Below are positions 29,493 through 63,580 of a stretch of 64,000 nt of DNA, one piece after another; position 1 is the stretch's first letter, and every line of letters begins with the position of its first letter. The stretch lies in NCBI GenBank assembly GCA_002269645.1, contig NIVC01000118.1:1-64000 (forward strand). The letters are read 5' to 3'. Below the pieces are notes generated by a model. The model was given only the letters and a program-made list of their open reading frames with translations, was not told where the DNA came from and made no database searches. A program made the position numbers and the translations under genes. The stretch comes from Macrostomum lignano (Eukaryota).

Positions 29493-29781
29493 CTGCCCAG
29501 AGGTAGATTTTTATTTTGTTATTTTTAATGATATATTGGAGTTGAACAGTCTTACAAAACGAGACAAAATTTGCTAGATTAAATAGCTGAGGGAAGAAAC
29601 CAATAATTTCGTGACTTTGGCACGGACCTACGAAAATTTATTAACAATTTAATCAAGTTTCTTTTGTTTGACAGAGATGCATGAAACAAATTTAACCAAC
29701 TCTTTTTTTGCTGCTCAGTGGCTACATTACTTCATGTAGATAGGGTTTTGAGGTAACTGTCCAAGTTTGAGGTATCCAAGT

Positions 29782-30818
29782 TCCCAGTCCAAATTCCAGT
29801 CCCAGTCCTAGTCCCAGTCCAAATTCCAGTCCCAGTCCCAGTCCCAGTCCCAGTCCCAGTCCCAGTCCCAGTCCCAGTCCCAGTCCCAGTCCCAGTCCAA
29901 GTCCCAGTCCCAGTCCCAGTCCAAGACCCAGTCCCAGTCCCAGTCCCAGTCCCAGTCCAAGTCCCAGTCCCAGTCCCAGTCCCAGACCCAGTCCCAGTCC
30001 CAGTCCCAATCACAGTTCCAGTCCCAGTCCCAGTCCCAGTCCCAGTCCCAGTCCCAGTCCCAGTCCCAATCCCAGTTCCAGTCCCAGTCCCAGTCCCAGT
30101 CCCAGTCCCAGTCCCAGACCCAGTCCCAGTCCAAGTCCCAGTCCCAGTCCCAGTCCCAGACCCAGTCCCAGTCCCAGTCCCAGTCCCAGTCCCAGTCCCA
30201 GTCCAAGTCCCAGTCCCAGTCCCAGACCCAGTCCCAGTCCCAGTCCCAATCACAGTTCCAGTCCCAGTCCCAGTCCAGTCCCAGTCCCAGTCCCAGTCCC
30301 AGTCCCAGTCCCAGTCCCAGTCCCAGTCCCAGTCCCAGTCCCAGTCCCAGTCCCAGTCCCAGTCCCAGTCCCAGTCCCAGTCCCAGTCCCAGTCCCAGTC
30401 CCAGTCCCAGTCCCAGTCCCAGTCCCAGTCCCAGTCCCAGTCCAGTCCCAGTCCCAGTCCCAGTCCCAGACCCAGTCCCAGTCCCAGTCCCAATCACAGT
30501 TCCAGTCCCAGTCCCAGTCCCAGTCCCAGTCCCAGTCCCAGTCCCAGTCCCAGTCCCAGTCCCAGTCCCAGTCCCAGTCCCAGTCCCAGTCCCAGTCCCA
30601 GTCCCAGTCCCAATCACAGTCCCAGTCCCAGTCCCAGTCCCAGTCCCAGTCCCAGTCCCAGTCCCAGTCCCAGTCCCAGTCCCAGTCCCAGTCCCAGTCC
30701 CAGTCCCAGTCCCAGTCCCAGTCCCAGTCCCAGTCCCAGTCCCAGTCCCAGTCCCAGTCCCAGTCCCAGTCCCAGTCCCAGTCCCAGTCCCAGTCCCAGT
30801 CCCAGTCCCAGTCCCAGT
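29782..30818. repeat. (CCAGTC)n / (GGGACT)n hexamer array, ~170 units, in TRHR intron 3
   Basis: Direct reading. Confidence 0.98.
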
Positions 30819-31719
30819 ATCCAATACCCTCGGTAGGGCTGCAGGCACCCTGGCGCAACTCATGGGCTCTCATAAACACGCTCACAGTGTATACAGTATA
30901 CAGTTGTCCTGACTTTTTGAAAGCATCTCAAGGACTTCCTCAAGCTGCCATCCGGCTTGGAAGCGAGCGGTCATTCAAAAGCGTCTAGAAATAGAAATCC
31001 AGAAAGTCAAACGAGATTTTCGGGCTGAAACGGAGTCTTCATTTTGTTTTAATCTAGTGACTGGAATGAATTTATTCAAATTATGCAAAATGACCTACAC
31101 TACAGTGAAGATTTTGCTTTTAGAAGTCTCTTTTCCATTGCTCGCTTTGAGTAAGCATGATACACTGCAAGACGTGAGCAGAATGACATGTAGGACGCTT
31201 TTCGTTGCAGAAAAGGATTGTTCTAATTATCCCAATTATTGCTAATACTGCTTCAAATTAGTTCGTAAAAGTGTCTTCAAAACTCGATCTTGTTTCTTTA
31301 ATTAGATTTGGCCATGGAGGCTGCAGAAGCTGGCTCAGTCTACTGACTTACAAAAACTTTTGGCTTTTAATCAATGCAACACGGTTGCCGTGAGGGCATG
31401 GACCAGTGACTTCAGGGTGGACTGCGGAGACTGACAAGTATAGCCCAGTGGGGAGTTGTAAATTGTGACTCATGGGAGTCTCCCGTTAGATTGATTAAAT
31501 ACAAGTACATGAAAATTTAATTGACCTTTCGAACGAGCGTTCAAGTTTGCCCTGTTCAAATCGGGCTGTTAACCCCTGTTCAAGTGGTAGACTTCTAGAA
31601 AAACACGGGGATCAGGATAGATATCTACTGGTAAATAGGGATTTGGGTTGCGATTTACCTGTGATAGGTAATGAGATTGGAGATACATTGGAATCTGGGC
31701 TAGGATCAGTTAATATTTG

Positions 31720-32213
31720 GATTGGAATCTGGATTGGGATCTGGATTGCTCTGAATTGGGATCTGGATTGGGATCTGGATTGGGATCTGGATTGGGATCT
31801 GGATTGCGATCTAGATTGGGATCTGGATTGGGATCTGGATTGGGATCTGGATTGGGATCTGGATTGGGATCTGGATTGGGATCTTGATTGGGAGCTGGAT
31901 TGGGATCTGGATTGCGATCTGGATTGGGATCTGGATTGGGATCTGGATTGGGATCTGGATTGGGATCTTGATTGGGAGCTGGATTGGGATCTGGATTGCG
32001 ATCTGGATTGGGATCTGGATTGCGATCTGGATTGGGATCTGGATTGGGATCTGGATTGGGATCTGGATTGGGATCAAGATTTGGATCTGGATTGAGATCT
32101 GGGTTAGGATCTGGATTGGGATCAAGATTTGGATCTGGATTGAGATCTGGGTTAGGATCTGGATTGGGATCAAGATTTGGATCTGGATTGAGATCTGGGT
32201 TAGGATCTGGATT
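31720..32213. repeat. 12-bp minisatellite (GATCTGGATTGG) in TRHR intron 3
   Basis: Direct reading; starts ~10 nt from the splice donor. Confidence 0.95.
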
Positions 32214-33145: not shown

Positions 33146-33720
33146 ATCATTGTCTTCATTCCTAAACAGAATCATAGCTATTTTTCAAGCCATGGGGTCT
33201 CGGCTATAGAGAATATGCTTGACTAACCCATTGTTCTGATGACTTGACTGTAGGGGGCACATCTTTTTAGACATATTTATTAGGCTAGCTGCCAGCATTG
33301 AGCGGCAAAAGGCAAGAAAGCTCAATGGGATGAATCGCATTCACTCTTGTTAGACGGTCCAGAAGCCCGAGACAATAAATGCATGGCCTGGCTTCGTGCG
33401 CTGCCTCGGGGTTTTTTAAAGTGAAAAGTAAAAATTGCGTGCCTGTTTGACTTTGTCCTCTTTAAAGCATTTGAAGGCCGTTAGAGATCTCATTTCGTCA
33501 ATCTCAGTTGTCATTTTTGCGTAGCTTCAGTTTGTGGGAAAAGGGAACGAAATTCTAGCCGCGGACCAGCTGCTCCGCTAATCTCCCCGAGCATTCAATG
33601 CCGCTGTGTGCCAGACCTTGGGAGTGAGAGTTAAATAGGGGCGGGTGTGTACTGTCACTTTAAATTCAGTACCTCACGCGATTAACCACAAATGGTTTGA
33701 TTAAGGTTTGTCTATCGATA

Positions 33721-34204
<484 letters not shown>

Positions 34205-34644
34205 GCCTCTGACAGGCTGTTGAGCGCCAGCCCCTCCAGTTTCAGTCAAACCTGGCAGAAAAAGTCGCCCAGCCAGCCTAAAAACTTTCATTCCGGAGAC
34301 CCCGCGCGGCAATTTCGCAGAATCTTTTCATTGCCCCCCGCTGACAGGCGAATTGCGTGTCACTCTCCGCTCCCCCCTCCCCTGAAGCACCGCTGCCAGA
34401 AACGTCTGTTTGGCGCAGAGAGGAGCTGTCCCAACATCAGTATTGGGCAGTTTGTTTGTAGGAAGTTTTCGGGCACCCATCCATGATGATTTATTGCTTC
34501 CATGTCTTGCCTGATTGCGAATCCCCGATGGTAAGAGAGGGAAGAGCGAGACTGAGGCCCAGGTAAAACACGGGATTAATATCCTAAGATTGCAGTCGAG
34601 CTCTCCACGGAAGCCATGTCTCAATAGATTTATAGAATATGAGT

Positions 34645-36210: not shown

Positions 36211-36245
36211 CAACCAAAGGACAAATGAACATAACTGCCACTTAC

Positions 36246-36856
36246 CGATGCCCACAAGCAGGTAGCACTAGGCTGCCATTAAACATGCTTTTCTGCTTAA
36301 TCATTGCCAAGTAGATCCAGGGCGAGTTGTACACCAATCCAAACAGCCAGACGCCGAAAATGATGCGCTTTGCTCGCTTCACGGTGCAAGCGGTCTGGGC
36401 GCTGATTGGATGACAGATGGCGATGTACCGCTCGACTGAGAAAGCCGTGATGGAGAAGGCGCTGGTGTTGACGCCTACGTAGGTGAGATATACAGTCATC
36501 TGGCAGCCGACTAGGCCTCCCAGAATCCAATGATCCCTGACTGAGTTCATCTCGGTGATTAGGGACACCGATCCGACCACCAGGACTATGAGATCAGCGG
36601 CTGACAAGGACACCAAGTAGCAATTGGTCGGGGTTAGCATGCGCGCTTTGGCGGTGAGGACCACCAGGATTACTAGAAGGTTGCCAATGAAACCAACTCC
36701 AAGATTGATGGCGCAGATGAGGCTGGCAACCAGGCGCATGGGGATGCTGTAGTACAGCTCCAGGTAGGGAATCGAGCTCAGGTCCAGCGGGGTTGCCGCG
36801 TCCTCAATGGTGGACATTGTGGACATTGGAGCGTCATGAACTTCGGTCGTGGACAT
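36246..36856 (-). CDS. TRHR: TRH-receptor-like GPCR, first coding exon (N-terminus, TM1-TM4)
   Basis: GFIGNLLVILVV, TPTNCYLVSLSAADL, SITAFSVERYIAICHPISAQ..CTVKRAKRII are hallmark TRHR stretches. Donor CG|GTAAGT. Confidence 0.93.
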
Positions 36857-37099
36857 TTTTTTAGCAACTATACTTTGATTTGACTTCCTTTGACTTTTTC
36901 TTCCGTTCTCTCTGGGGATCTGTCTGCGTCTTGCGAGTTGCCTGTAGCCACTTTAAATCCCCTAAACTCCCGGACCAATGGGGAAGAAGGGAGGGCCTGT
37001 CCGCTTGATTGGCTGGGATAGAAATTCTGCTCGAAATTAGCGAGACAAATGTTTATAGGCCTCTGGATTAGTACCAGTTTGATGGGTGCAGCATCCTGG

Positions 37100-38387
37100 A
37101 TGTGTGTGTTAGACATGAGTGTGTTAGACATGAGTGTGTTAGACATGAGTGTGTTAGACATGAGTGTGTTAGACATGAGTGTGTTAGACATGAGTGTGTT
37201 AGACATGAGTGTGTTAGACATGAGTGTGTTAGACATGAGTGTGTTAGACATGAGTGTGTTAGACATGAGTGTGTTAGACATGAGTGTGTTAGACATGAGT
37301 GTGTTAGACATGAGTGTGTTAGACATGAGTGTGTTAGACATGAGTGTGTTAGACATGAGTGTGTTAGACATGAGTGTGTTAGACATGAGTGTGTTAGACA
37401 TGAGTGTGTTAGACATGAGTGTGTTAGACATGAGTGTGTTAGACATGAGTGTGTTAGACATGAGTGTGTTAGACATGAGTGTGTTAGACATGAGTGTGTT
37501 AGACATGAGTGTGTTAGACATGAGTGTGTTAGACATGAGTGTGTTAGACATGAGTGTGTTAGACATGAGTGTGTTAGACATGAGTGTGTTAGACATGAGT
37601 GTGTTAGACATGAGTGTGTTAGACATGAGTGTGTTAGACATGAGTGTGTTAGACATGAGTGTGTTAGACATGAGTGTGTTAGACATGAGTGTGTTAGACA
37701 TGAGTGTGTTAGACATGAGTGTGTTAGACATGAGTGTGTTAGACATGGGTGTGTTAGACATGAGTGTGTTAGACATGAGTGTGTTAGACATGAGTGTGTT
37801 AGACATGAGTGTGTTAGACATGAGTGTGTTAGACATGAGTGTGTTAGACATGAGTGTGTTAGACATGAGTGTGTTAGACATGAGTGTGTTAGACATGAGT
37901 GTGTTAGACATGAGTGTGTTAGACATGAGTGTGTTAGACATGGTGTGTTAGACATGAGTGTGTTAGACATGAGTGTGTTAGACATGAGTGTGTTAGACAT
38001 GAGTGTGTTAGACATGAGTGTGTTAGACATGAGTGTGTTAGACATGAGTGTGTTAGACATGAGTGTGTTAGACATGAGTGTGTTAGACATGAGTGTGTTA
38101 GACATGAGTGTGTTAGACATGAGTGTGTTAGACATGAGTGTGTTAGACATGAGTGTGTTAGACATGAGTGTGTTAGACATGGTGTGTTAGACATGAGTGT
38201 GTTAGACATGAGTGTGTTAGACATGAGTGTGTTAGACATGAGTGTGTTAGACATGGGTGTGTTAGACATGAGTGTGTTAGACATGAGTGTGTTAGACATG
38301 AGTGTGCTAGACATGAGTGTGTTAGACATGGGTGTGTTAGACATGAGTGTGTTAGACATGAGTGTGTTAGACATGAGTGTGCTAGAC
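37100..38387. repeat. 15-bp minisatellite (GTGTTAGACATGAGT), ~85 units, probably in a TRHR 5'UTR intron
   Basis: Direct reading. On the minus strand it ends directly in CATCCAG, a plausible acceptor (~37099). Confidence 0.97.
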
Positions 38388-39982: not shown

Positions 39983-41049
39983 TCATTTCTTCTTCTTCCT
40001 GGGCGCTCGCTTTTTCGTCTTCTGCTCAATGAGCAGCAACGACTGCTTCTTGACGGCCGCCCTGGACAGGACCTCGCCGTCGCCGTCCGCTCCGTCGCCA
40101 CCAGAGTCCGAGTCGTCATCGTCGTAGACGTCACGACCGCCGCCGCCACCCCCGCCAGCGCCTCCGCCGCCGCCGCCGCCGACACCGACGCCGCCAGAGC
40201 CCAACTTGACCCGCACGTTCTGCTGCGGCAGCTTCGACTCCACCTGAGCGCTGAACTCTTCGCTGCGCATGTCGCGCAGTCGCTGATCGACGTCCTCAGT
40301 CTCCAGCTCCTCCAGCAGCCGGATGACTTTCTCCTCGGCCTTGCCCAGCAGGTCGATGGCGTAAGTGTCGCTGGCCGGGTCGATTTGCGCCTGCAGCGCG
40401 TGGCTCCGCGGCGCCCGGACGTGGGCGAGCTTCTCGTGCAGGTGCTCCACGCCGGCCTTGGCCTGCACGAGAACTTTGGACAGCCGCTCGAGCTCCTCGG
40501 CGATGCTCACCCGGTCAGAGTCTTCGCGGAGCAGCTGGTTCTGGTACTTCTCCAGCAGAGTCTGGCCGGAGCTCAGCCGGCACTCGCCGGAATATTTCAG
40601 ATCGTCGAACTGCGCTCTCAGCTGGTCGCGCTGGTCGCGCAGCCGGCGAATCTGCGTCTCCGACGACGCCTTGAGACCTTCGAGGCGTTCGCGGGTGGCG
40701 CCCTGGCCTTCGAATCTGGCAACGACCTCGGGCAGGTCGCTGACTCCCGTGGCCTCTTTAATGCGCTGGAAGGCCTCCTGCAGATCTGTGATCCGCTCCG
40801 GCGGCTGCTGCAGCTGCTGCTGAGAGCCGCCCGGGGCAGCTGAAAACGACCTTTCGCCGCCGCCGCCGCCGCCGATGTCCTGCGTGCTGCTGCTCTCGCG
40901 CTGAGCGATTCGCCGTTCAATTTTCTCGTAGTGAAGCCGCTTCTCCTCGGCCTCGGCTTTCAGCTGCTGGATTTCCTGCTCGCGGCGCTTCCGCTCAGTG
41001 TAGACTGTCTCCTCTGTCTTCTTGAGCTTGAGCTGCGCCTCCTCCTTGT
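39983..41049 (-). CDS. CCDC151: Outer dynein arm docking complex subunit CCDC151/ODAD3, last exon
   Basis: CCGCAG acceptor, phase matches exon 2. Continuous frame KEEAQLKLKKTEETVYTERKRRE...AEEKRLHYEKIERR...AFQRIKEATG...LKYSG...NVRVKL to stop. Confidence 0.9.
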
Positions 41050-41134
41050 CTGCGGCGCAAGATTTGACGTTTTATGCCGGTTGTTTAAGTATTTAATGAA
41101 GTTTAATGAACTAACTGCATTGTGTCCTAGTTAG

Positions 41135-41790
41135 GGATGGAGTGGAGTGGGCGTGCTGAGTGAGGTGGGCGTGCTGAGTGAGGTGGGTGTGCTGAGTGAG
41201 GTAAGCAGCGTGATGAGTGAGGTGGGTATGCTGAGTGAGGTAAGCAGCGTGATGAGTGAGATGGGCGTGCTGAGTGAGGTGGGTGTGCTGAGTGAGGTGG
41301 GTGTGCTGAGTGAGGTAAGCAGCGTGATGAGTGAGGTGGGTGTGCTGAGTGAGGTGGGTGTGCTGAGTGAGGTAAGCAGCGTGATGAGTGAGGTGGGTGT
41401 GCTGAGTGAGGTGGGTGTGCTGAGTGAGGTGGGTGTGCTGAGTGAGGTGGGTGTGCTGAGTGAGGTGGGTGTGCTGAGTGAGGTGGGTGTGCTGAGTGAG
41501 GTGGGTGTGCTGAGTGAGGTGGGTGTGCTGAGTGAGGTAAGCAGCGTGATGAGTGAGGTGGGTGTGCTGAGTGAGGTGGGTGTGCTGAGTGAGGTGGGCG
41601 TGCTGAGTGATGTGGGTGTGCTGAGTGAGGTGGGTGTGCTGAGTGAGGTGGGTGTGCTGAGTGAGGTAAGCAGCGTGATGAGTGAGGTGGGTGTGCTGAG
41701 TGAGGTAAGCAGCGTGATGAGTGAGATAGGCGTGCTGAGTGAGGTGGGTGTGCTGAGTGAGGTAAGCAGCGTGCTGAGTGAGGTGGGCAC
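41135..41790. repeat. 18/21-bp minisatellite (GTGGGTGTGCTGAGTGAG / GTAAGCAGCGTGATGAGTGAG) in CCDC151 intron 2
   Basis: Direct reading. Confidence 0.97.
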
Positions 41791-42279
41791 ATATCGCGAA
41801 TTGGTTAACTTATAGAAGCTTTGAAGCTAAGCTGCCTTGTGCAAAGCAAACTGCTTCCCATCTTGCCTGTGCTCTTCAATACTGATTTCTTGTGTTCTTC
41901 CTAAATGTGTATTTAATTACTTCAACCGGGCAGCGCAGAGCTCTATGAGAAGCCCAGGAAAAGTTGCTCTCAGTTGCTCACGGATGACTGAAGATGCCCA
42001 GCTAGCCAACTTCAAAGTGAAGTCTGTCTTTGAGAAAACTCGAGTCAAAGAAACTGTTTCGATACTAGAGTAAGGTGCATGGTAGTGTTATGCCTGCAGA
42101 AAGAATGGCTGCCCACTGCATATCTGATGCTAATCTTTAATCCACGCCAACAGCTCATAGCACACGTCTAAAAGGTACTTCGGTATCGCAACAGTTTTTT
42201 GTCAAAAATAGTAGCATTTCGAAAAACCTAAACTTCAAACTTAAACAGGCCAGTTGCATCTGAAGCAGACACATTATTA

Positions 42280-43330
42280 TCCAAAACAAACATCCTCAAT
42301 CAAAACAGACACATCCTGATCCAAAACAGACACAGCCTTTTTTCAAAACAGACATCCTGATCTAAAACAGACATCCCCAATCAAAACAGACATCCCCAAT
42401 AAAAAAATACACATCCTCATCCAAAACAGACACATCATTTTTCAAAACAGACACATCCTGATCTAAAACAGACATCCCCAATCAAAACAGACATCCCCAA
42501 TCAAAACAGACATCCCCAATCAAAACAGACATCCCCAATCAAAACAGACATCCCCAATCAAAACAGACATCCCCAATCAAAACAGACATCCTCAACCAAA
42601 ACAGACACATCATTTTCCAAAAAATACACATCCTCATCCAAAACAGACACATCATTTTCCAAAACAGACACATCCTGATCTAAAACAGATATCCCCAATC
42701 AAAAAACATTCGCATACTCGTACTAATCCAAAACAGACGCATCCTCAACCAAAACAGACACATCCTCAACCAAAACAGACACATCCTCATCCAAAACAGA
42801 CACATCATTTTCCAAAACAGACACATCCTGATCTAAAACAGATATCCCCAATCAAAACATACGCATCCTAATCCAAAACAGACGCATCCTTAACCAAAAA
42901 CAGACACATCATTTTCCAAAACAGACGCATCCTTATCCATAAAAGACACATCCTCATCCAAAACAGACACATCCTCATCCAAAACAGACACATCCTCAAC
43001 CAAAAAAGACGCATAATTTTCCAAAATAGACACATCCTTATCTAAAACAGACACATCCTCATCCAAAACAGACACATCCTCATCCAAAACAGACGCATCC
43101 TTATACAAAACAGACCCATTCTCAACCAAAACAGACACATCCTCAACCAAAACAGACACATCCTCATCCAAAACAGACACATCCTCATCCAAAACAGACA
43201 CATCCTCATCCAAAACAGACGCATCCTCAACCAAAACAGACACATCCTCATCCAAAACAGACACATCCTCATCCAAAACAGACACATCCTCATCCAAAAC
43301 AGACGCATCCTCATCCAAAACAGACACACC
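42280..43330. repeat. 19-21-bp minisatellite (AAAACAGACACATCCTCATCC) in CCDC151 intron 2
   Basis: Direct reading; starts ~10 nt after the donor. Confidence 0.95.
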
Positions 43331-43341
43331 AGCCAACTCAC

Positions 43342-43726
43342 TTCTTTTAGCTTCCTCCTCCCGCAGCCGGAGCTCTGCAATTTCGACTCTGCAGTCGCGG
43401 ATCTCCTTCTCCATGGAGTCCAGTGAGTTGCCAAAGCTCAGATGGTCCTCGTGCAGTCGAGCTTTGATCTGCTCATAAGTTCGTTTGATATGCTCAGCCT
43501 CTTTCAGCTTCATGCTAGTCTTGTCCATTTTGTTCTCAAGGTCGCGCAGCTTCTGCGCCTCAGGCGACGCGTTGGCGTCGTCTCCATCGCCTCCAGCGGC
43601 GTTTGAGGAAGCCTCTCCGGATTCTTTCTTCAACGCCTGATTGGCAGTTTGCAGCTCTTGAAGGCGCTTTTGCTTACCGGAAGTTACGTGCTTCAAAGCG
43701 TTTAGCTTCTTCTTCGTGTCGCACAC
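43342..43726 (-). CDS. CCDC151: CCDC151/ODAD3 exon 2
   Basis: ACAAAG acceptor and A|GTGAGT donor. LNALKH...LRDLENKMDKTSMKLKEAEHIKRTYEQIKARLHEDHLSFGNSLDSME. Confidence 0.9.
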
Positions 43727-44238: not shown

Positions 44239-46829
44239 GACTAATCAGCTGTGCAGTGTCTACAACTGAAAAGCTGGAATTTTATTAATAAATATCCTTT
44301 TTACTAATTCAGGTTAATGACCGAAAGACCAAAGCGTACTCTTCTACTGTATGTGCTCATTAAAAATTGAGTTGGAATTTGTTTAAATACCCATTCTTAT
44401 TTCTGGTCTTTTAATCTATTTTTGATAACTAATACTAAGTGTAGTATTGAGACAGAGGTAAAAATGGTTATTAACTTTCTCTTCTATTTACTGCGCCTCG
44501 TTTTTTGTTTAAACTGCTTAATTTTTTCTAAAATAATGCCAAACTTTGCAATATTACAAAGTATACAGTAATAGCATATTTGCTTTATTTAACAAATTAA
44601 TGTAAATTGGTAATTGCTTTTTTATTTTACTGAAAATCTAAACATTTTCTAATTGTTTCCATTTAACAGAGTTTTTGGAATTAAAAATTAAAAACTTGGA
44701 TGAATTGGAAGAAAGAATTTTGGAAAGGTTATTTTAATATTTCTTTGAAAAGAGGCATTGAAACCCAGGCAGAAAAGCTCGAGAAATAGCTAAAATTAAT
44801 ACCCGGTAATACTTTCTTAGTTGCAGTCTTGAAGGATTGCGAAAAATGATAAAACTATGAGTTTAAAAGGACAGAGACAATTTAAAAGTCAACTATGCCT
44901 GACAGCCACAGACTAACTTCTTTGCTTTTCAATTTTTGCAATGCTTTTTAAAATTCGAAATACAACTACTATTTAACTTTAATACAGACACTGAAGATTC
45001 AAATGATTCAGCAGCTGCTTACTGAGGAGCAGCATTAAGATTAACAAGATTATTATCAATCTGCAACAGCTATAGGGCCTAGGGGTATATAGTTGAAAAA
45101 CTATAATGAATATTTTTATCAAAAATATTTAGCGAACATTAATGCCTATAGCCAAAAAAATTAAGAAACTCTGATTCATCTGATTCAATGATTCAAAAGC
45201 TTCAAATGAATAGATTGAGAGATCAGGAAATATATATTAATATATTATACGCAATACGCTTAATAGTTACACTGATAAAACCAAGTTTCGATATCGGATT
45301 GAATGTTTAACTAAATTTAGCTAAAAATGGAACTGTCACAAACTTACTTTTACCATAGTAATGCAAATTCGTAAAGTTTAGACGCTTTAAATTAGTGCAT
45401 GAATTAAAAAATAACATTATTTAAAATAAAAATACACTATAAAGTCTTGCTTTAAACGAGAAACATTTTTATATTGAGAAACTTTGTTTGAAACATCTAG
45501 ACTAACGGCTTAGCAAAAAATCTAAACTTGGTAAATGGGTTGGAAACTAACAGTATTATTTATTCATCGTAGTCAAGAAAATACTGAAAAAATACGTGCA
45601 CAACATGCGATTATACTGCAAACTCATTTTGTACACATCTTTAGCGCTTTGAGAAAGTTCTTTATAAACTGCAGATGGGCCGGTTAGCTTGAATATTGGT
45701 AATACTTGAGGGAACAAGAAGCATGAATGATCCTCCAGAAAGGAGCTAACATGTCGATATAGAGTTTTTACATTATACATGCGTACTTGCACTGATAATC
45801 ATATCTTTTGTACGCTTGTACAGATTTTACTATTTAATAATTACGGTGATACAATTATCCAAATATTGCGATTGAGTAATTGTCCTTTAATTTAGCAATA
45901 AAGATGTTTATTTAAGTTTCAGTATATTTCGTCTTCGAAGACTTCGTTAGTAAGTTCAGTGTCACTAACAGTGTCATTAAATTGTCGCTAATGTTTAACG
46001 AAGGATTAAACTATAAAATATTTAATATATAAAATATTTAAATATTTAAATATATAAATATAAATATAAAATATATAATAAATAATATTTATTCATCATA
46101 AATTACGATGAATAAGACTGTCCTATGGTTTCAAAAGGTCGATCACCGTCTCTAAACCGGCGTCGGCCCTCAAATCTTCTTCTGTAGCGGACCCGGAGTC
46201 CCGTCTCGTTAGTAGGTGTCCTCGGGTGTACTTCTATGCAGGCAGGTTGCGGTTATGTGGCGGGTTACGCCACAACAATCAAGGTTTAAACACGCACTAC
46301 ATGTAAAATTGCAAGATTGTTATTCTAAAACCAGCACTCTGATTACAGCACTGCGAGCCGTGATGCGGTCCATATTAATCATGAAAACTGGTAACTTTTC
46401 TAAATTTAAATTGAGCGTCCCTTGGCCAAACCCAGCATTGCTGGAAGACAGACTGGCAGACAAGGATGCACGCGTGGTGTACAGCTTTACTTCATTACGC
46501 GTGCCCAATGACAGCTGCCATGTTTATAGTTTCATATTTCACCACTAGTAGCAACACCAACAGCCAAGGCATTTTAAGATATAATTATATTTTTAGAATT
46601 GCGGTCATAGCTATTCTGCACAAGGGAAATGCCTGACCACGCGTTGCTTTATACATGCAGTGTTCAGTTTGTGTGCGGGTTGAAGGTAATTCTTCATTGA
46701 TGACGAATGACTGATTAATCCGCTAGTCTACCACGGGAATCCCGCTTCGGCTTTGCATAAAAGAATTCTGTGGTTGGCTCTGAAGCAAATTAAAATAACC
46801 TGGAACTTAATCCGTCCGAAACTGGCGCA

Positions 46830-47417
46830 ATGACCGCTGACAAAGTTGTCCTGCTATTGCAGTTGTCTATCCTCTACGGCCTGCTGGTGCCGCTCGCCAG
46901 CTCCTCGCCGGGATCCGGCCGGATCTTCGACAGCGTCAACTCGAGCTTCGCCGAGTTCGCTTGTCCTCGCGAGTTCGCCGTCTTGTCGCTCGGCTGGTCG
47001 CCGAGTCGCCGTCGAAGCGGCGTCGATTTCCTGGTCGAGAAGCGGTCGCTAAGCAACCAGACGAAGGAGCTGGAGCTGTCGCAGCTGCTCTCGGAGCTGC
47101 AGCAGGTCATCGTTCGGCACAAGCTGAGCTTCAACGTCTCCGAAACGAATCGCCGACTGCCGACCTCGCTGTTCGAAGCGAGCGACGCCAAGCCGAGGCT
47201 TTGCGCTCCGACCTACGAGCTGGACGCCGGAGGCGTGACGCGGCCGAGGCTGCCGACCTTCCTGCTGGGCGTGTCGTGTCCGCACAGCTGCAGGGAGGTC
47301 CGACGAGACGTGCGAATCTACAAGCTGCTGTGCGACTCCGAGCAGCCCGTGTACTACAGCTCGGCTGTGAGCATCGCGGTGGACTGCGCACCCGAGGCTG
47401 ACAATGCGTGGCTGTGA
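46830..47417 (+). CDS. Secreted protein A, 195 aa, cystine-knot-like C-terminus (intronless)
   Basis: ATG, hydrophobic signal peptide, RRRS and KR basic sites, N-glycosylation sequons, 6 Cys. Paralogous to 49788 and 51401. Confidence 0.85.
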   Translation: MTADKVVLLLQLSILYGLLVPLASSSPGSGRIFDSVNSSFAEFACPREFAVLSLGWSPSRRRSGVDFLVEKRSLSNQTKELELSQLLSELQQVIVRHKLSFNVSETNRRLPTSLFEASDAKPRLCAPTYELDAGGVTRPRLPTFLLGVSCPHSCREVRRDVRIYKLLCDSEQPVYYSSAVSIAVDCAPEADNAWL

Positions 47418-48746
47418 TTCAAAAGCAACGCTTTCAAACATAGGTCGCATGATTTGTATAGTTTCTAGCAGTAGTATAGTTTGCTACTGCTATGAGATCA
47501 GGGTCTACATTTTGCTGCTTTCTTATACTTCCTTGGTACATGCATCAGCGCCTTAGTGATACTAGAATGCAATGCAAATATTTATTAGAATAATAGCATT
47601 TTTCTAATTTTGATTCGAGAATGCCCAAGTAATTTACTCAAGTCAAAGTAAAATGTTAACTTCTTGATTTGTTTTGAAATTGATTTTATTGTGCTTCAGA
47701 TAAATAAAAGGCAAAAACGTGTAAAATTATCTATAGTTTACTTATTCGTTCAGCTATTTTTGGTAGTATAAACAAGAAAATTTGCAACAGTAACAAAATA
47801 AGAATGTCTTTAAATTTTGGTTAAAAAATCATCCAGCAGGTGGCAAACCTTTAATTGTTTTAATCTACTCACCCGGGTAAACGTCGACCGTGAAGAAGGA
47901 CTTTCAGAATTTGAAGCAGACAGAATCAAAGAGTGCATTTACGTGTTTAGAAATTCCACTTGGAGTTACGCAATATGTACACTTTATCCACAATAAGATG
48001 AAAATTTTCTACCGGTATTACCAATGCTAGTACTGTATTGAGCCCAGTATGGAGCAAAAAGCATTGCAAGCTTTGCTGGATATGCACAAACTTTGTCTAT
48101 TTGTTAATCTTAACCAACTTACTTAATAGCGACACCTGTCCAACCCACTTGGCAGTTTTTGTTTCTGAGGCAAACCCGATTAATCGCCTTGACCTTTTAT
48201 TAGCTGGCAAAAATTCTTATCATTTGTTTAAATTTGAGGTAATTCCTCGCAGACCATTGGTTGGGTTTAGTCTGGCAGATGCAGCAGTTCGACGCCAAGC
48301 TGCATCAAGTGCAATAGGCCAGTTGGCAAAGTTACCAAAGAGAGACAGCACTTATACCCAAGTGAAACAGTTGCCTACTGACTGAAACTTGTGAAAGCTG
48401 GCGCGTTGGGCTTTTGGTCTAATTGGCAAAGTTTAATTTTGTAAATTAAATTAATAGCACTCAGAAATGCGAGGCGCTGAATCCAGAGTCAACACCATGG
48501 TACCCGTTCGTGTATTAAAAGGAATGAAGAAAGAGATGTCATGGCTGTTCTAACTCAAACTCCGTGTGCAAGCAACAAATAGTTCAAGTGTTCTTTCTCG
48601 AATTCAATGCTCAAATTAGTTGGTTATCCTAGCCTTCCTGTGGCATACCATACTATCAGTCACTCCTCATTTACTGTTGCTGGTTGTTAAGAACTTTTGT
48701 CATATTACGCTCAAAAAGAAATTTAATGAATATTTATGCAGATTAT

Positions 48747-49058
48747 GGGAGTAGCAACCTAGTGGTCACAGCGTCGGACTCAAAACTTGAAGGTCGGGCG
48801 TTCGATTCCTTTCCCATTGGAACAATTTGTGTCCTAATAAGCAAGACACTTAACTCTGCATTGCTTCAGTTCACCCAGCTGTAAAATGGGTGGTAATTGG
48901 GGGTGTGTGGCGACCCCCCAGTCCTTGGACTGAACAGCCGTACGCAGCCTTCAGATGCGCCGCGCAATAGCTGCGGCTGAGCTGTCCGTTGCACATCTGC
49001 CCAAAGGATAGACTGGATAGTTATCAAAATTGAAGTCAACTTGAGAGGGTAGACCCAC
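48747..49058 (+). mobile_element. tRNA-derived SINE with CORE-like central domain
   Basis: A-box-like CCTAGTGGTC, B-box-like GTTCGATTCC, then AGCAAGACACTTAACTCT...CAGTT...CAGCTGTAAAATGGG (MIR CORE pattern). Second copy at 60259. Confidence 0.8.
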
Positions 49059-49787
49059 AATGTTCGATAAATTCGAAAATTACTATCAGCGGTTTCCTAC
49101 TATTAGTAGCTGCTTAAATCGATAATTTTTTCTTAACAAAAAAGACAAAAAAGGCAATCTTTCAATAACAGCATGGCAGGACTATATATCTGATTCCTGA
49201 TCCATAAAGCGCTTTGTTGCAATTGGGACACTTCATTTTATCGATATTTTCTATCCAAATATTGACCTTTCTGCGTTTATAACTCAATTTGACAGCGTTG
49301 CTATGTGTATTATTAATAAGATTGTCTCCGTCTATTTAAAACTGTCTGCGACCTCCCTAAACGCTATGACTCGTTTCAGACTGGCATCTGCACTGCCAAA
49401 TCCACACGCTAGAGCCAATTTTAAATCGAGAAAATTCAAAAAAGTCGAATTCAGCCAATGACAAGCTAGATTCATTTCTAAATATAGTCAGCAGAATTTC
49501 TGCAGGTGCCAGTAATGTTGAATTACCCCATCCGCGTAGGGGGGCAGCAGGGGTTACCCTGCGAATTGAAATGATCCATCTAATGGCTAAATTAGGGACT
49601 TCTTTGAGGTAAAAATAGATTTTGCGAGAATTGACCAATGCTGACTCATAGATGAAGCCGGTGATGCTGTGATAAATCCCGCGGGAAATGTAGGCTGGCT
49701 GTATAAAACTGATCCAGACTCCGCCGCAGGTATTAGCAAGGTTGACAACGGTCTGTAGAGTTGATAGAAGCGGGAGACACAATAGTC

Positions 49788-50363
49788 ATGTTGCACCGCT
49801 TGCAGTACATGTATGTAGCCCTGCTGATGGCAAGCTTGGTACTCCACAGTCAGCAGCTGTCAAGTAGCGGTCGAGTATTTGAGGAGGCAAGTGGCAGCCG
49901 CGTCGAGTCCCTGTGCAACCTGACTGGCGGCGTGCCCGACGGCCCGTTTCTGATCGAGCTGAAACGACCGCAGGTGAACCAGACCACTCTGGAGGCGTAC
50001 GACCTGCTCGCCGAGCTGAGGAGAACTCTGGCCAAAAACTGGGTCGATTTCAATCAAACTGAGACGAACCCGATAAATTTCACAAAGATTTCAATCGCGA
50101 GCAAAGCAACAAACCGAGTCTGCCCGCCAACATACAGATTTATCAGGTATTCGTCGAGCTACTCGGTCCCAACCTACCTGCTGAATGTCACCTGCTCTGG
50201 CGACTGCATTCCGGTAATGCGCTCCGTGCCGGTGTACAAACTGATCTGCGAGAATCCGGACACTGATGATAAGGCAAGCTGGAGTGTCGCTTACGCCTCC
50301 AAGCTCGTCGGCGTTGGAGTGCACTGCGCTCCGAAGGATCGCGTTACCGAATTTTTCGGATAA
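49788..50363 (+). CDS. Secreted protein B, ~191 aa, divergent paralog (intronless)
   Basis: ATG at 49788 with signal peptide and TATAAAA at 49702. Shares SGR.F, NQT.LE...LL.EL, N..ETN, C.PTY, PT.LL.V.C...C..V.R.V..YKL.C and V.V.CAP with A and C. Confidence 0.87.
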   Translation: MLHRLQYMYVALLMASLVLHSQQLSSSGRVFEEASGSRVESLCNLTGGVPDGPFLIELKRPQVNQTTLEAYDLLAELRRTLAKNWVDFNQTETNPINFTKISIASKATNRVCPPTYRFIRYSSSYSVPTYLLNVTCSGDCIPVMRSVPVYKLICENPDTDDKASWSVAYASKLVGVGVHCAPKDRVTEFFG

Positions 50364-51325
50364 CGCACTTAACGGACTTCTTGCAGCTGAAATATTTTGT
50401 TTTAATTTTATACGCCACCATTTAATCTTGCGTAATCTAGGAGTAGTACTTAGTTTTATTATTTTAACCACTTCCTTGCATGAATTTAATCAATACCTGT
50501 ACAGGCTCGAATGTTTGGTAATGCTGACATACAAACTGTACCATTAATTCCGCGAACTTCCTTGAACCGAATTGTGGCAGCAAGAAACTTGAAGCTCAAA
50601 ACTTTTTGCTAATGTTTTATATAACGACTCGTATTTGGATTTCTTGGAAATGCATCGCCTATTTTAAATTGCTCTGCTCAATAAAAGAGCTCAACAAAAA
50701 AGGAAAAGTTTTTTTATGTTTTTTGTGTTTCCAGCGACAAAGGCAGTAAAACACGAATTTGGCACAGAATGACAGACAACTACGGGGTTTAAACACTCAC
50801 CCCGCCACCCTGGCGCTGCACAAACCAGTTCATTAATTTTCCCGTAGGAACTAAGGGCGTAGATAATTTATATAAATCTATACTTCTGAATTGGCAATAA
50901 AACAAGGACGTGTCTTAAGAACCAAGCATCTGAGAAGAGCTGTATAACGAGTCAAACTTCTATACTGAGGTGAAATTGTGTACGCAAAGAGCAAAACAAA
51001 CGGCGCCACTATATTGCAAGATTAAATAAGGAACTTTTCAAAGCTATAATTAGCAAATGGAAGCACACCGGAATTCTTTTCTGCTTCCATCGGACAGCGA
51101 AATGCTTTAGGCGCAGCTGTCAGTCAGTAGCGTCCAACCGCTGAAACTTTTGGCTAAAAATTTAGCGCAGTAAATGTTCAAAAATAGCAACAGAATGGGG
51201 GCGTGGGCGCCAGCTCAGTCCTATGATGCGGTCGAAAATATATATTGTTAGAATCGGGTAGTTTATTAATTAGGGCCACCGCCCCCAGACAGACAAAACC
51301 CGTGGGTGGGAACCAGCCAGGGCAC

Positions 51326-51348
51326 TATAAATACGCAGCAGACTAGTC
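51326..51348 (+). promoter_or_regulatory. TATA box (TATAAATA) and Inr-like element of gene C
   Basis: TATAAATA at 51326-33, CTAGTCT shortly after it, ATG at 51401. Confidence 0.55.
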
Positions 51349-51400
51349 TTTAATAGAATTTGTGCAACCTTCCCTCGCGATAGTTCTTTGTGCCCAAAAA

Positions 51401-51976
51401 ATGACTTCAGCGGCGACTCCACTACTTTTTATATGCGGCCTGCTGGTGCCGCTCGCCAGCTCCTCGCCAGGATCCGGCCGGATCTTCGACAGCGTCAACT
51501 CGAGCTTCGCCGAGTTCGCTTGTCCTCGCGAGTTCGCCGTCTTGTCGCTCGGCTGGTCGCCGAGTCGCCGTCGAAGCGGCGTCGATTTCCTGGTCGAGAA
51601 GCGGTCGCTAAGCAACCAGACGAAGGAGCTGGAGCTGTCGCAGCTGCTCTCGGAGCTGCAGCAGGTCATCGTTCGGCACAAGCTGAGCTTCAACGTCTCC
51701 GAAACGAATCGCCGACTGCCGACCTCGCTGTTCGAAGCGAGCGACGCCAAGCCGAGGCTTTGCGCTCCGACCTACGAGCTGGACGCCGGAGGCGTGACGC
51801 GGCCGAGGCTGCCGACCTTCCTGCTGGGCGTGTCGTGTCCGCACAGCTGCAGGGAGGTCCGACGAGACGTGCGAATCTACAAGCTGCTGTGCGACTCCGA
51901 GCAGCCCGTGTACTACAGCTCGGCTGTGAGCGTCGCGGTGGACTGCGCACCCGAGGCTGACAGTGCGTGGCTGTGA
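51401..51976 (+). CDS. Secreted protein C, 191 aa, near-identical mature region to A (intronless)
   Basis: AAAATGA start, signal peptide MTSAATPLLFICGLLVPLASS. 51436-51976 equals 46877-47417 apart from 3 substitutions. Confidence 0.87.
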   Translation: MTSAATPLLFICGLLVPLASSSPGSGRIFDSVNSSFAEFACPREFAVLSLGWSPSRRRSGVDFLVEKRSLSNQTKELELSQLLSELQQVIVRHKLSFNVSETNRRLPTSLFEASDAKPRLCAPTYELDAGGVTRPRLPTFLLGVSCPHSCREVRRDVRIYKLLCDSEQPVYYSSAVSVAVDCAPEADSAWL

Positions 51977-55900: not shown

Positions 55901-57229
55901 ATGTATGACAGAGTTGGAGCCTGTCGTCAGCGGCCAGAAGACAACACTTCGGAGATCGCTGAGTGGGTAATTCGTCTCTTAGGCGCCGTCATCATTGTTG
56001 GCGGCGTGCCCTGCAACCTGGCGGCGGCCTACATCCAAGGCACGGAGAGGTCCAACCGAGTCACCACTCGCTTCCTGATGGTCTGCCTTGCGCTGAGTGA
56101 CAGCGGAGTCCTCCTCCTAGCGGTGGTGCGCTACTGGATCCGGGAGACGTTTAACATTGATTTGCGCGATCTGCACCCTTTTATCTGCCGCTTCCACCAG
56201 CCAGTAGTGGCCACGGTCAGCGACGTCGCTGTGTACACCCTGTGCGCCATCGGAGTTGAGCGCTTCGTCGTGGTTGCGTTCCCGTACCGGGTGCAGCAGA
56301 TTCTGACTACTCGCAACTTTAGCCTGTCGTTCGGCGCGATGGTGCTGGCGCTGCTGGTTAAAAATATGCCGCTGTCATTCTTTCTGCACACCAGCAAATG
56401 CTACCGGCTGCTCAACTCCAGCCTGACAGAACAGAACGAGACAGACCTGGCCGAGATGGAAGCTGGCATTGACTACCAGCTGGTGGACAAGTGCGACTAC
56501 AATCAGGACTTTGCGAAGTTCTTCATCAACCTGGACATGGTCACCTACCTGATTCTGCCCTACACTATTCTGCTGTTTTGCAACATCTACATCTATACCG
56601 CCATGCGACGTCAGAGCGCTGCAATGCGTCGCCATGCTCAGCCGACTGCCACAAACCAGCGGGCCGATAAGGGCAAAGCGGCTGACCAGGAGGTTCTCAA
56701 CCCGAAGCGTCAGGGCGCATCGGCTGGAAACGCAGCCAGCAACGTTGAGAAGAAACGAGAGGCTGCTCGTCGCAAGCCGGAGAGTATCATGAAGATCCTG
56801 GCTGTGCTCACCGTGATCCACATTATCACCACCTTGCCAGCTTCCATTGCTCAGAAGCTGAAAGTCTACGGCGATAAAAACTCGATCAGCGGTGCCACAA
56901 ACAATGCTCTCAAGACGCTTATGTTCGCCAACAATGCCACCAACTTTCTGGCTTATTTTATCTCCTCAACTGCGTTCAGACGCCGCGTGATGAACGCTTG
57001 TCCGTGGCGCAGGTCGTCCAACGGTTCAAGCGTCAACGGCGATGGCAAGAAAGCCCGAAGACGTCAGCAGGGGAGTCCCGAGGCGGAGCAGTCAGCAGAG
57101 CTGCCGATGCTGCGGATGACAACAACAGCTGCAAAGGCTGCGCCGTCGACTGAGGTGGCCGACCGGGACAGCCGCGAGGTAGTGGCCGCGCTGATCTCGG
57201 CTGAAGTGCCAGCCATGGAAGATGACTGA
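55901..57229 (+). CDS. Intronless rhodopsin-class orphan peptide GPCR (FMRFamide-receptor-like type), 442 aa
   Basis: Seven hydrophobic segments, LALSD, C in TM3, GVERFVVVAFP, YLILPYTILLFCN, TTLP, NNATNFLAYFISSTAFRR. Confidence 0.9.
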   Translation: MYDRVGACRQRPEDNTSEIAEWVIRLLGAVIIVGGVPCNLAAAYIQGTERSNRVTTRFLMVCLALSDSGVLLLAVVRYWIRETFNIDLRDLHPFICRFHQPVVATVSDVAVYTLCAIGVERFVVVAFPYRVQQILTTRNFSLSFGAMVLALLVKNMPLSFFLHTSKCYRLLNSSLTEQNETDLAEMEAGIDYQLVDKCDYNQDFAKFFINLDMVTYLILPYTILLFCNIYIYTAMRRQSAAMRRHAQPTATNQRADKGKAADQEVLNPKRQGASAGNAASNVEKKREAARRKPESIMKILAVLTVIHIITTLPASIAQKLKVYGDKNSISGATNNALKTLMFANNATNFLAYFISSTAFRRRVMNACPWRRSSNGSSVNGDGKKARRRQQGSPEAEQSAELPMLRMTTTAAKAAPSTEVADRDSREVVAALISAEVPAMEDD

Positions 57230-60258: not shown

Positions 60259-60500
60259 GGGGGTTGTATAGCCTAGTGGCTAGAGCGTCGGGCTCACGAC
60301 TTGAAGGTCGGGGGTTCGATCTTTGATCCCACTGGAACAATTTGTGTCCTGGAGCAAGACACTTAACTCTGCATTGCTTCAGTTCAGCCAGCTGTAAAAT
60401 GGGTGCTAGCATTGGCTTGGGTAATTGAGGCTGTGTGTGGCGACCCCCCAGTCCTTGGACTGAACAGCCTTACGCAGCCTTTGGATTTGCCTTTGGATAG
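60259..60500 (+). mobile_element. Second copy of the CORE-like tRNA SINE
   Basis: Aligns with 48747-48950 (GACTTGAAGGTCGGG, GGAACAATTTGTGTCC, GCAAGACACTTAACTCTGCATTGCTTCAGTTCA, GTGTGTGGCGACCCCCCAGTCCTTGGACTGAACAGCC). Confidence 0.85.
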
Positions 60501-61758: not shown

Positions 61759-62230
61759 CTATAGAGCGACCTCCTCCAAGAGAGCCAAGAGCCAGCCGTA
61801 CAGCAGGGCCTTATTAGCCACCTGGCTGCAGGTGAACATCCAGTGCAGGAAGGCCACCCCCTGCCTGGCGCTCCGCTCGCCCAGCAGCAGCAGCGCCGGC
61901 TCCGGGAGGCTGGCCTGCATCAGCTGCAGGCACCGCGCCGATTCTGAGCCGTCCTGTCGCCGCTGCTCGAAGTCGTCATGACGAGAGGCCGCTGCCTCCG
62001 CTGGTGGCCACAGGGTGTCCCGCAGCGCGCTCAAGTAGGACAGCGAAGCCTCCGGCCCCGTCCAGGCCGCCAGGAGGTCGCGGCACCAGCGCTCTGCGGT
62101 GGTCTGGCCGCCGGCGTGCATGGCGAACAGGTGCAGCAGGCGGCGGGGCGCGCTGGACGAGCCAGCGAGGTCGAAGACGGCGTCGGCCAGATGAAAGACG
62201 GCGTCGGCGAGCGGCTCCGGCGGCTGCTGC
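61759..62230 (-). CDS. PXA-type sorting nexin (SNX13/14/19/25 family), C-terminal Nexin_C exon
   Basis: CCTCCAG acceptor. YLSALRDTLWP, LPEPALLLLG..ARQG..FLH, NKALLYGWLLALL. Confidence 0.8.
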
Positions 62231-62269
62231 CTGGAGGATTGACGAATGATGAAGGATTAGTGATCTGAG

Positions 62270-63260
62270 GATTGGTGATCTGAGGATTAGTGATCTGAGG
62301 ATTAGTGATCTGAGGATTAGTGATCTGAGGATTGGTGAACTGAGGATTGTTGAACTGAGGATTGGTGATCTAAGGATTAGTGATCTGAGGATTGGTGATC
62401 TGAGGATTGGTGAACTGAGGATTGTTGAACTGAGGATTGGTGAACTGAGGATTAGTGATCTGAGGATTGGTGATCTGAGGATTGGTGATCTGAGGATTAG
62501 TGATCTGAGGATTAGTGATCTGAGGATTGGTGATCTGAGGATTAGTGATCTGAGGATTGGTGATCTGAGGATTGGTGATCTGAGGATTAGTGATCTAAGG
62601 ATTAGTGATCTGAGGATTGGTGATCTGAGGATTAGTGATCTGAGGATTGTTGATCTGAGGATTGGTGATCTGAGGATTGGTGATCTGAGGATTGGTGATC
62701 TGAGGATTAGTGATCTGAGGATTGGTGATCTGAGGATTGGTGATCTAAGGATTAGTGATCTGAGGATTGGTGATCTGAGGATTGGTGATCTGAGGATTAG
62801 TGAACTGAGGATTAGTGATCTGAGGATTAGTGATCTGAGGATTGGTGAACTGAGGATTGGTGAACTGAGGATTAGTGATCTGAGGATTGGTGAACTGAGG
62901 ATTGGTGAACTGAGGATTGGTGAACTGAGGATTGGTGAACTGAGGATTGGTGAACTGGGGATTAATGAACTGAGGATTAATGAACTGAGGATTGGTGAAC
63001 TGAGGATTGGTGAACTGGGGATTAGTGAACTGGGGATTAGTGAACTGGGGATTAATGAACTGAGGATTGGTGAACTGAGGATTGGTGAACTGAGGATTGG
63101 TGAGCTGAGGATTAGTGAACTGGGGATTAATGAACTGAGGATTAGTGAACTGGGGATTAGTGAACTGGGGATTAATGAACTGAGGATTAGTGAATAGTGG
63201 ATTAGTGAACGGAGGATTGGTGAACGGATGGTTGGTGAACAGATGGTTGGTGAACGGATA
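62270..63260. repeat. 15-bp minisatellite (TGAGGATTAGTGATC) in SNX intron
   Basis: Direct reading; ends ~35 nt before the acceptor. Confidence 0.97.
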
Positions 63261-63580
63261 ATTGTGTTAAGATAGATGAGTTGCAGGAGGTGTAATTGCA
63301 AATATATTCTATTTTGATAGGTGAATCCGTATGCCTCTCCTGAATTTCCCTGGTGAACGCAGTTAGCACAACTCATAAAAAAGACGTCACTATAATGAGG
63401 CATAATATATCTAACAGGTGTTCTATAAGTACCAAGCATAAAAATAGCCTGTTTAATTTCCTAAAAACCGAGCCAACCATCTGTCTTAGCAAAGCTGATA
63501 ATCTTTTTATAAATCTATGAATTTAATAACGGAAATGACTTTCTGAGCCGTCAAACATCCAAATGAAAACTTTTTCGCAC

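Follow-up and report, generated by a model that had tools for sequence, protein, structure and literature searches.

Three tandem genes for predicted secreted, cysteine-patterned proteins in Macrostomum lignano: a possible divergent family of IL-17/Trunk-type ligands

Within the first 64,000 nucleotides (nt) of contig NIVC01000118.1 (assembly GCA_002269645.1) of the flatworm Macrostomum lignano, the whole of which is referred to as the window below, three paralogous open reading frames (ORFs) lie in a row on the + strand between positions 46830 and 51976. They are called genes A, B and C here. Their products are predicted secreted proteins of unusual cysteine patterning, and we put a probability of roughly 55% on the reading that they constitute a divergent ligand family of the IL-17/Trunk branch of cystine-knot proteins. 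The coding sequences (CDSs, with lengths in amino acids, aa) and their upstream elements are as follows:

46756..46763, + strand: TATA-like box CATAAAAG of gene A, 74 nt upstream of its ATG
46830..47417, + strand: gene A, 195 aa and a stop in an intronless CDS; leader at about aa 1-25, Cys45, RRR at 60-62, KR at 71-72
49702..49709, + strand: TATA box TATAAAAC of gene B, 86 nt upstream of its ATG
49788..50363, + strand: gene B, 191 aa in an intronless CDS that starts at the first ATG; Cys43, KR at 59-60 and then P
51326..51333, + strand: TATA box TATAAATA of gene C, 75 nt upstream of its ATG
51401..51976, + strand: gene C, 191 aa in an intronless CDS that starts at the first ATG

The term intronless refers to the coding sequences, and introns in the untranslated regions (UTRs) may exist in addition. 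For B and C, the start was set at the first ATG (49788 and 51401, respectively), while the ORF list opens at an upstream TTG (49761) and GTG (51362). According to tblastn, A, B and C are the only copies of the family in the 64-kb window. Gene B is a divergent paralogue, about 33% identical to A (E 1.6e-19 with A as the query), and gene C is nearly identical to gene A apart from its first ~12 codons, the two proteins being 95-97% identical. A dispersed repeat of ~200 nt lies between A and B (48758-48951) and recurs with 83% identity at 60272-60481.

All three proteins start with a hydrophobic leader that ends in small residues (MTADKVVLLLQLSILYGLLVPLASS in A, MLHRLQYMYVALLMASLVLHS in B and MTSAATPLLFICGLLVPLASS in C); these leaders were called by eye, not by a signal-peptide predictor. 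The N-x-S/T sequons number three to five per protein (N37, N76 and N102 in A; N44, N64, N89, N97 and N133 in B), and two occupy conserved positions. Each protein shows the same layout of one N-terminal Cys followed by five within the last ~65 residues (mature Cys 45, 125, 150, 154, 168 and 186 in A; 43, 112, 136, 140, 154 and 180 in B). The C-terminal motif opens with CAPTY or CPPTY, continues after 12 or 11 residues with PTFLL or PTYLL and then GVSC or NVTC, has a C-x3-C element in its middle (CPHSC or CSGDC), and closes with ..V.R.V..YKL.C and a last V/I.V.CAP. Potential basic processing sites, RRR-S and KR-S, are present in A and C. The RRRS sits in an 11-residue insert that B lacks, and the KR is common to all three proteins, with Pro coming next in B (KR-P). 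An earlier note, made from the sequence alone, had described this locus as a small tandem family of secreted, Cys-patterned proteins: three intronless genes with a leader, sequons and one N-terminal Cys, the five-Cys motif at the C-terminus, and RRRS and KR sites in A and C. That description was borne out throughout, cleavage at the basic sites being a prediction.

The ORFs also have the makings of real genes. GC content at third codon positions (GC3) is 0.84, 0.68 and 0.82 in A, B and C, against AT-rich surroundings. Between A and B, nonsynonymous divergence (dN) amounts to 0.82 and synonymous divergence (dS) to a saturated 1.73, with identities of 0.48, 0.51 and 0.38 at the three codon positions. 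The third position is thus the least conserved, a substitution pattern that fits a translated, fast-evolving sequence. An AATAAA follows 286 nt past the stop of A (at about 47703) and 317 nt past the stop of B. Long antisense and out-of-frame ORFs are also listed over A and C and represent the usual by-product of GC-rich codons. Taken as sequence, A, B and C look like real tandem genes for N-glycosylated, predicted secreted proteins of about 19-20 kDa.

The similarity between A and C is concentrated in a single block:

46877..47417 versus 51436..51976, + strand: A/C block, 541 nt, 99.4% identical

Its 5′ edge falls inside the signal-peptide codons and its 3′ edge coincides with the last base of the stop codon. 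As the flanking sequences are unrelated on both sides, the block is probably a gene-conversion tract confined to the CDS, with an assembly artefact as a possible alternative source. Two further origins were ruled out, namely a splice-acceptor or exon boundary, because there is no AG at the 5′ edge, and a retrocopy, because the UTRs are not part of the block, which starts inside the CDS.

The assignment to the IL-17/Trunk branch was approached by comparing profiles. To this end, the C-terminal ~78 residues of the family served as the hhalign query against 57 IL-17 sequences (S1 Dataset of PMC4517768), whose domains were aligned, and against 20 Trunk sequences of many phyla from the CLANS file of PMC6660194. 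A set of 10 IL-17s that lack Cys6, the last Cys of the knot, was compared separately; it consists of F25D1.3, T22H6.1 and C44B12.6 of Caenorhabditis elegans, one C. briggsae protein, two Lottia proteins, two oyster proteins, and one protein each from amphioxus and pearl oyster. The results were:

All 57 IL-17 domains: P 3.8e-4, probability 36%, 63 columns, decoys 1/400
Invertebrate IL-17s: P 2.8e-4, probability 41%, 63 columns
10 IL-17s lacking Cys6: P 5.6e-5, probability 66%, 64 columns, decoys 0/450
Vertebrate and tunicate IL-17s: P 0.079, probability 0.7%, 39 columns
20 Trunk sequences: P 3.2e-4, probability 39%, 65 columns
IL-17 and Trunk combined: P 5.1e-5, probability 67%, 64 columns

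In the decoy test of the Cys6-lacking set, the best decoy scored 22.0 versus 28.5 for the real comparison, and a small Trunk/PTTH set alone gave P 0.003. The same five-Cys mapping (Cys1, Cys2, Cys4, loop Cys and Cys5 of the knot) recurred in every IL-17 and Trunk alignment, from which the following knot-like domains can be predicted:

47196..47393, + strand: gene A knot-like domain, aa 123-188; C125 as Cys1, C150 as Cys2, C154 as Cys4, C168 as loop Cys and C186 as Cys5 (hhalign), with CAP in place of the terminal CxC
50115..50333, + strand: gene B knot-like domain, aa 110-182; C112, C136, C140, C154 and C180, with an 8-residue insertion in the strand 3-4 loop
51755..51952, + strand: gene C knot-like domain, aa 119-184; C121, C146, C150, C164 and C182

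Pairwise comparisons point the same way. When B was run with phmmer against the 57 IL-17s, ILC-17.1 of C. briggsae and of C. elegans matched it with an E value of about 1e-3, over the stretches CIPVMRSVPVYKLIC and CMPIVRKVPILRRVSC. Aphid PTTH matched B with an E value of 2.4e-4 among 8 sequences and has VTCSG and SVPV in common with it. Our own hidden Markov model (HMM) of the 57 IL-17 domains gave A 7.1 and B 8.0 bits, which is inside the top ~0.5% of shuffled sequences, not beyond it. Two controls help to calibrate these values. The reversed family sequence reached P 0.26, and bursicon, a DAN-type knot, reached P 0.009, aligning over 16 columns only; the IL-17 and Trunk scores are about 100-fold better than the latter and cover the whole domain. 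The resemblance to the IL-17 and Trunk-PTTH branch that the earlier note had pointed out finds suggestive support at the level of profiles (P 5.6e-5 and 3.2e-4).

IL-17 knots have been classed by the disulfide they are missing, the ancestral type comprising Cys1-4, Cys2-5 and Cys3-6; the so-called T1C type lacks Cys3-6 and retains Cys1-4 and Cys2-5, whereas vertebrate IL-17s lack Cys1-4 (PMC11087794). In gene A, C125, C150, C154 and C186 stand on the Cys1, Cys2, Cys4 and Cys5 columns, the second Cys of the C-x3-C aligning to Cys4, not Cys3. C168 occupies the column of a loop Cys that is frequent among invertebrate IL-17s, and the family has neither Cys3 nor Cys6. To judge from these alignments, its pattern corresponds to T1C and differs from that of vertebrates. 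The earlier suggestion of a knot left incomplete 'as in IL-17' needs correcting in this respect, since the alignments point to the invertebrate type represented by F25D1.3 and T22H6.1, not to the vertebrate type.

Under this assignment, the C-terminal ~70 residues would form a reduced cystine-knot domain in which two beta-hairpin fingers are joined by Cys1-Cys4 (C125-C154 in A) and Cys2-Cys5 (C150-C186). The third disulfide, Cys3-Cys6, would be absent, with CAP taking the place of the terminal CxC and a link of three residues between Cys2 and Cys4. The leftover C168 and C45 might pair with each other or engage in interchain bonds. Human IL-17A/F offers a parallel for the latter, its N-terminal Cys being bonded to the matching loop Cys of the partner chain, and PTTH is a disulfide-linked homodimer. 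By analogy with PTTH, C45 would be lost if the precursor were cut at the KR common to all three proteins, and C168 would then be available to link a homodimer. The protein would be secreted, glycosylated and dimeric and could act as an extracellular ligand for a receptor with fibronectin-III ectodomains, be it IL-17R-like (SEFIR/Act1) or Torso-like (tyrosine kinase).

The closest counterparts among known systems, with the best hhalign match, are the T1C-type invertebrate IL-17s, such as ILC-17.1 (F25D1.3), T22H6.1 and C44B12.6 of C. elegans and 169526 and 159302 of Lottia. Like the family, they are secreted proteins of about 150-220 aa with a C-terminal domain, the same order of Cys1, Cys2, Cys4, loop Cys and Cys5 at similar spacing, and a single last Cys followed by x-P or x-V (ACIP, ACVP and GCHS, compared with DCAP and HCAP). 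The strand after Cys4 is also alike (CMPIVRKVPIL, compared with CIPVMRSVPVY in the family), and an N-terminal Cys is found in many IL-17s. Furthermore, IL-17 genes often form tandem arrays, and many contain few introns or none (PMC4517768). Trunk and PTTH, the ligands of the Torso receptor tyrosine kinase, share with the family a secreted precursor in which basic cleavage sites (predicted ones in the family) precede the C-terminal knot or knot-like domain, a Pro eight residues before Cys2, and a C.P....VK(I/V)L(R/K)R stretch after Cys4 that resembles C..V.R.V..YKL of the family; aphid PTTH and B have VTCSG...C...SVPV in common. The vertebrate IL-17A/F proteins share the incomplete knot with only two core disulfides, but they keep Cys3-6 and lack Cys1-4, the opposite of what is predicted here. 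Crustacean female sex hormone (CFSH), whose mature peptide contains eight Cys, offers an architectural analogy only. This neurohormone with an IL-17 domain has a role in sexual differentiation, including in a hermaphroditic shrimp (PMC10604874); set beside the family by description, the point of likeness is a prepro-hormone layout with a dibasic site before the IL-17-type domain.

Several observations weigh against an IL-17/Trunk origin. Direct searches yielded no orthologues: a Pfam-A hmmscan of A and B returned nothing relevant, with no IL17 or Noggin match even at E up to 10, and PDB sequence searches with full-length and C-terminal profiles gave no significant match and listed no IL-17, NGF or noggin. 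The hhalign probabilities of 36-67% for the IL-17 and Trunk sets are under the usual standard of 90-95%; the P values themselves are optimistic, since the bursicon control shows that they are inflated for Cys-rich profiles; the column-shuffled decoys are a lenient null model; and the Cys6-lacking subset was picked after the motif had been seen. Hallmarks are mostly replaced on both sides. For IL-17, CPW has become C(A/P)PTY, R-x-P...E-A-x-C has become (L/V)PT(F/Y)LL.V(S/T)C, and the C-x-C that follows Cys2 lacks its second Cys, while the N-terminal region is longer than in T1C IL-17s and contains possible dibasic processing sites. Trunk has its six knot Cys complete, the terminal C-x-C (CCEC) among them, whereas the family ends in CAP and has one Cys only between Cys2 and strand 3. 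Two motifs conserved in Trunk, PWxC and W.DLG..FPR, are missing as well, with C(A/P)PTY and (L/V)PT(F/Y) standing in their places. A link of just three residues between Cys2 and Cys4 is unusual in itself, compared with about 12-25 in T1C IL-17s, and its sole possible precedent, aphid PTTH (VTC-SGNL-C), was read from a figure processed by optical character recognition.

Structure prediction adds to these reservations. AlphaFold2 models reached a predicted local distance difference test (pLDDT) score of 39 for the full length and 47 for the domain, from an alignment of the three family sequences only; adding IL-17 rows would have biased the models towards the IL-17 fold. Foldseek searches of both models against the PDB gave best E values of 0.45 and 1.3, with no knot protein significant. 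As a point in favour of the assignment, both of these low-confidence models contain a long beta-hairpin between C154 and C186, the expected site of finger 2; this hairpin of strands 3 and 4 is the only part of the fold that they predict.

The strongest competing explanation is an unrelated, lineage-specific and fast-evolving secreted family whose Cys spacing resembles that of IL-17 and Trunk by convergence or chance; such proteins could be gland, seminal-fluid, adhesive or defence secretions. We regard this as rather unlikely, albeit a possibility to be taken seriously. It would account for the outcome of the large-scale searches, in which no genuine match emerged from 5.8 billion proteins by word-indexed search, whether the query was A (E up to 0.01) or the family profile (E up to 10), or from 1.84 billion cluster representatives by exhaustive HMM search. 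Two actinobacterial WD40-repeat proteins surfaced in the latter and were dismissed as spurious because they matched a low-complexity stretch (SSSPGSGRIF...WSP) through summed repeats. Exact-sequence look-ups of A, B and C found none of them on record in protein collections. Since M. lignano proteomes are included in the collection searched and yet gave no match, the family is either unannotated there or too divergent. The earlier note's failure to recognise a named family thus proved justified, with Pfam, PDB sequences and the large protein collections all devoid of a genuine homologue. The divergence of the paralogues (33% identity, dN 0.82), tandem duplication with probable gene conversion, a combination typical of rapidly evolving secreted families, hhalign probabilities below 70% combined with inflated P values for Cys-rich profiles, and the lack of a confident AlphaFold fold would all sit well with such an origin. 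Against it stands the fact that the IL-17 and Trunk profiles, which are related but were built separately, both align over the full domain with the same five-Cys mapping and score about 100-fold better than noggin and bursicon, with 0 of 450 decoys in the case of the Cys6-lacking set. The likeness also extends beyond Cys: the CxP at Cys1 is shared, as are a Pro located eight residues ahead of Cys2 and the C-x-P/E-V-x-R-x-V-P/R-V/I after Cys4.

A noggin or noggin-like bone morphogenetic protein (BMP) antagonist that lost several cysteines, in line with the echo of noggin that had been noted earlier, appears very improbable. By eye, the first finger is indeed alike (CPVLY...WPRYVKVGSC...SC in noggin and CAPTY...LPTFLLGVSC...SC in the family), noggin-like genes are known to be expanded in planarians, and a first small mixed profile, which combined noggin with noggin-like, Trunk and PTTH sequences, gave P 0.011 over 25 columns. 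However, this signal came from the Trunk and PTTH rows. Noggin and noggin-like sequences by themselves (8 sequences, including nlg2 and nlg5 of the planarian Schmidtea) aligned over 6 columns with P 0.46, and canonical noggin alone gave P 0.26, so that noggin was rejected at the profile level. The noggin-like, Trunk and PTTH rows were machine-read from Fig. S1 of PMC9071555 and may contain errors, whereas the larger Trunk set and the planarian nlg sequences were taken from text files. Noggin has a C-terminal domain of nine Cys ending in CxCxC; the family has five C-terminal Cys, and neither the CxCxC end, the finger-2 Cys pair nor a detectable clip region, and the Pfam scan listed no Noggin match. 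Noggin does share a superfamily branch with Trunk. Trunk is the closest relative of IL-17 and has been proposed as the bridge between IL-17 and noggin (PMC11087794), and our own profiles agree with this view (hhalign P 2.4e-10 for Trunk versus IL-17 and 3e-9 for noggin versus Trunk). The direct link between noggin and IL-17 was weak (P 1e-3; small hand-built alignments).

There is equally little chance that A, B and C are non-functional, i.e. chance ORFs, pseudogenes or fragments of repeats or mobile elements. The absence of an annotated counterpart or exact match in protein collections and the odd boundaries of the A/C block could be taken as signs of this. Set against them are three intact ORFs of 191-195 codons that have kept their Cys and sequons despite 67% divergence, coding-type substitutions, a strong GC3 bias and TATA boxes at a fixed distance. 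Moreover, the repeats of the window, the A/C block excepted, are unlike A, B and C, and no reverse-transcriptase or transposase context is close by. Least probable of all is a three-finger Cys-rich module akin to activin receptor ectodomains: activin receptor type II ectodomains were the top PDB matches of the family profile (E 0.5-0.6, next to PUM), but these values are not significant, the alignment matches few Cys, and the ectodomain needs five disulfides, compared with five Cys in this region of the family.

The rest of the window contains a mixture of protein-coding and repetitive sequences. Three long abutting ORFs on the + strand, in three frames, together encode a sacsin-like protein with a Sacsin domain at its start and a HEPN domain near its C-terminus. 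BOX15_Mlig007813g2 of M. lignano matches the middle ORF with 93% identity, the next best matches being from M. lignano as well, and the changes of frame may be short introns or frameshifts. Two ORFs encode G protein-coupled receptors (GPCRs) of the 7tm_1 family of Pfam; for the one neighbouring the three genes, the exact sequence is not on record in protein collections. Two Glu/Lys-rich, coiled-coil-like ORFs flank a repeat array and may be exons of one gene. The micro- and minisatellite arrays yield spurious repetitive ORFs on both strands (GT/GA-type, 15-nt MSNTL, PHSAH- and SPIL-type). In order of position:

1684-2154, + strand, and 5481-6326, - strand: pieces of reverse transcriptase (Pfam RVT_1 at E 2.3e-11 and 1.3e-5), presumably from retroelements in decay
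9596-18506, + strand: sacsin-like protein (ORFs 9596-12196, 12193-14847 and 14817-18506)
29732-30885, 31547-32095, 33701-34312, 36868-38190, 41127-41815 and 61976-63439: micro- and minisatellite arrays
36242-36856, - strand: GPCR ORF covering the first half of the receptor only, abutting a long 15-nt tandem repeat
39983-40510 and 42890-43726, - strand: coiled-coil-like ORFs, one with a VSVLDED repeat, no Pfam match
55901-57229, + strand: rhodopsin-family GPCR, complete intronless ORF of 442 aa

No flatworms are among the species listed in the survey of invertebrate IL-17s (PMC4517768), and word searches of other IL-17 papers found no mention of flatworms or Platyhelminthes. Schmidtea, Schistosoma and Taenia were screened for Trunk, and the phyla named as having it exclude Platyhelminthes (PMC6660194). 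Literature searches for IL-17, SEFIR or Trunk ligands in flatworms or Macrostomum, and for SEFIR together with planarians, found no report. If the assignment holds, this would be a highly divergent family in a phylum for which ligands of the IL-17/Trunk kind have not been described, with no sign of being already known. The further-reaching proposal that the three genes encode the first such ligands to be recognised in Platyhelminthes, Macrostomum-specific, tandemly expanding, divergent enough to escape family models and the searches of 1.84 and 5.8 billion sequences, and built on a minimal two-disulfide knot with three residues between Cys2 and Cys4, is a tentative one to which we would grant slightly less than even odds.

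Were the resemblance to prove convergent, A, B and C would still constitute an unannotated and rapidly evolving secreted gene family, of ordinary interest. A true relationship would have broader consequences. IL-17 and Trunk/PTTH ligands act in immunity, neuromodulation, developmental timing and sexual differentiation of other invertebrates, and their evolution is under active debate, with PMC11087794 deriving the IL-17 pathway from a Trunk-Torso pathway. Flatworms would then keep a cytokine or neurotrophin-like signalling axis that the surveys consulted here do not report for the phylum, and the family would mark how far a cystine knot can shrink. It would also show that standard homology searches miss fast-evolving cytokines, and it would provide a candidate ligand in a genetically tractable, regenerating and hermaphroditic model organism.

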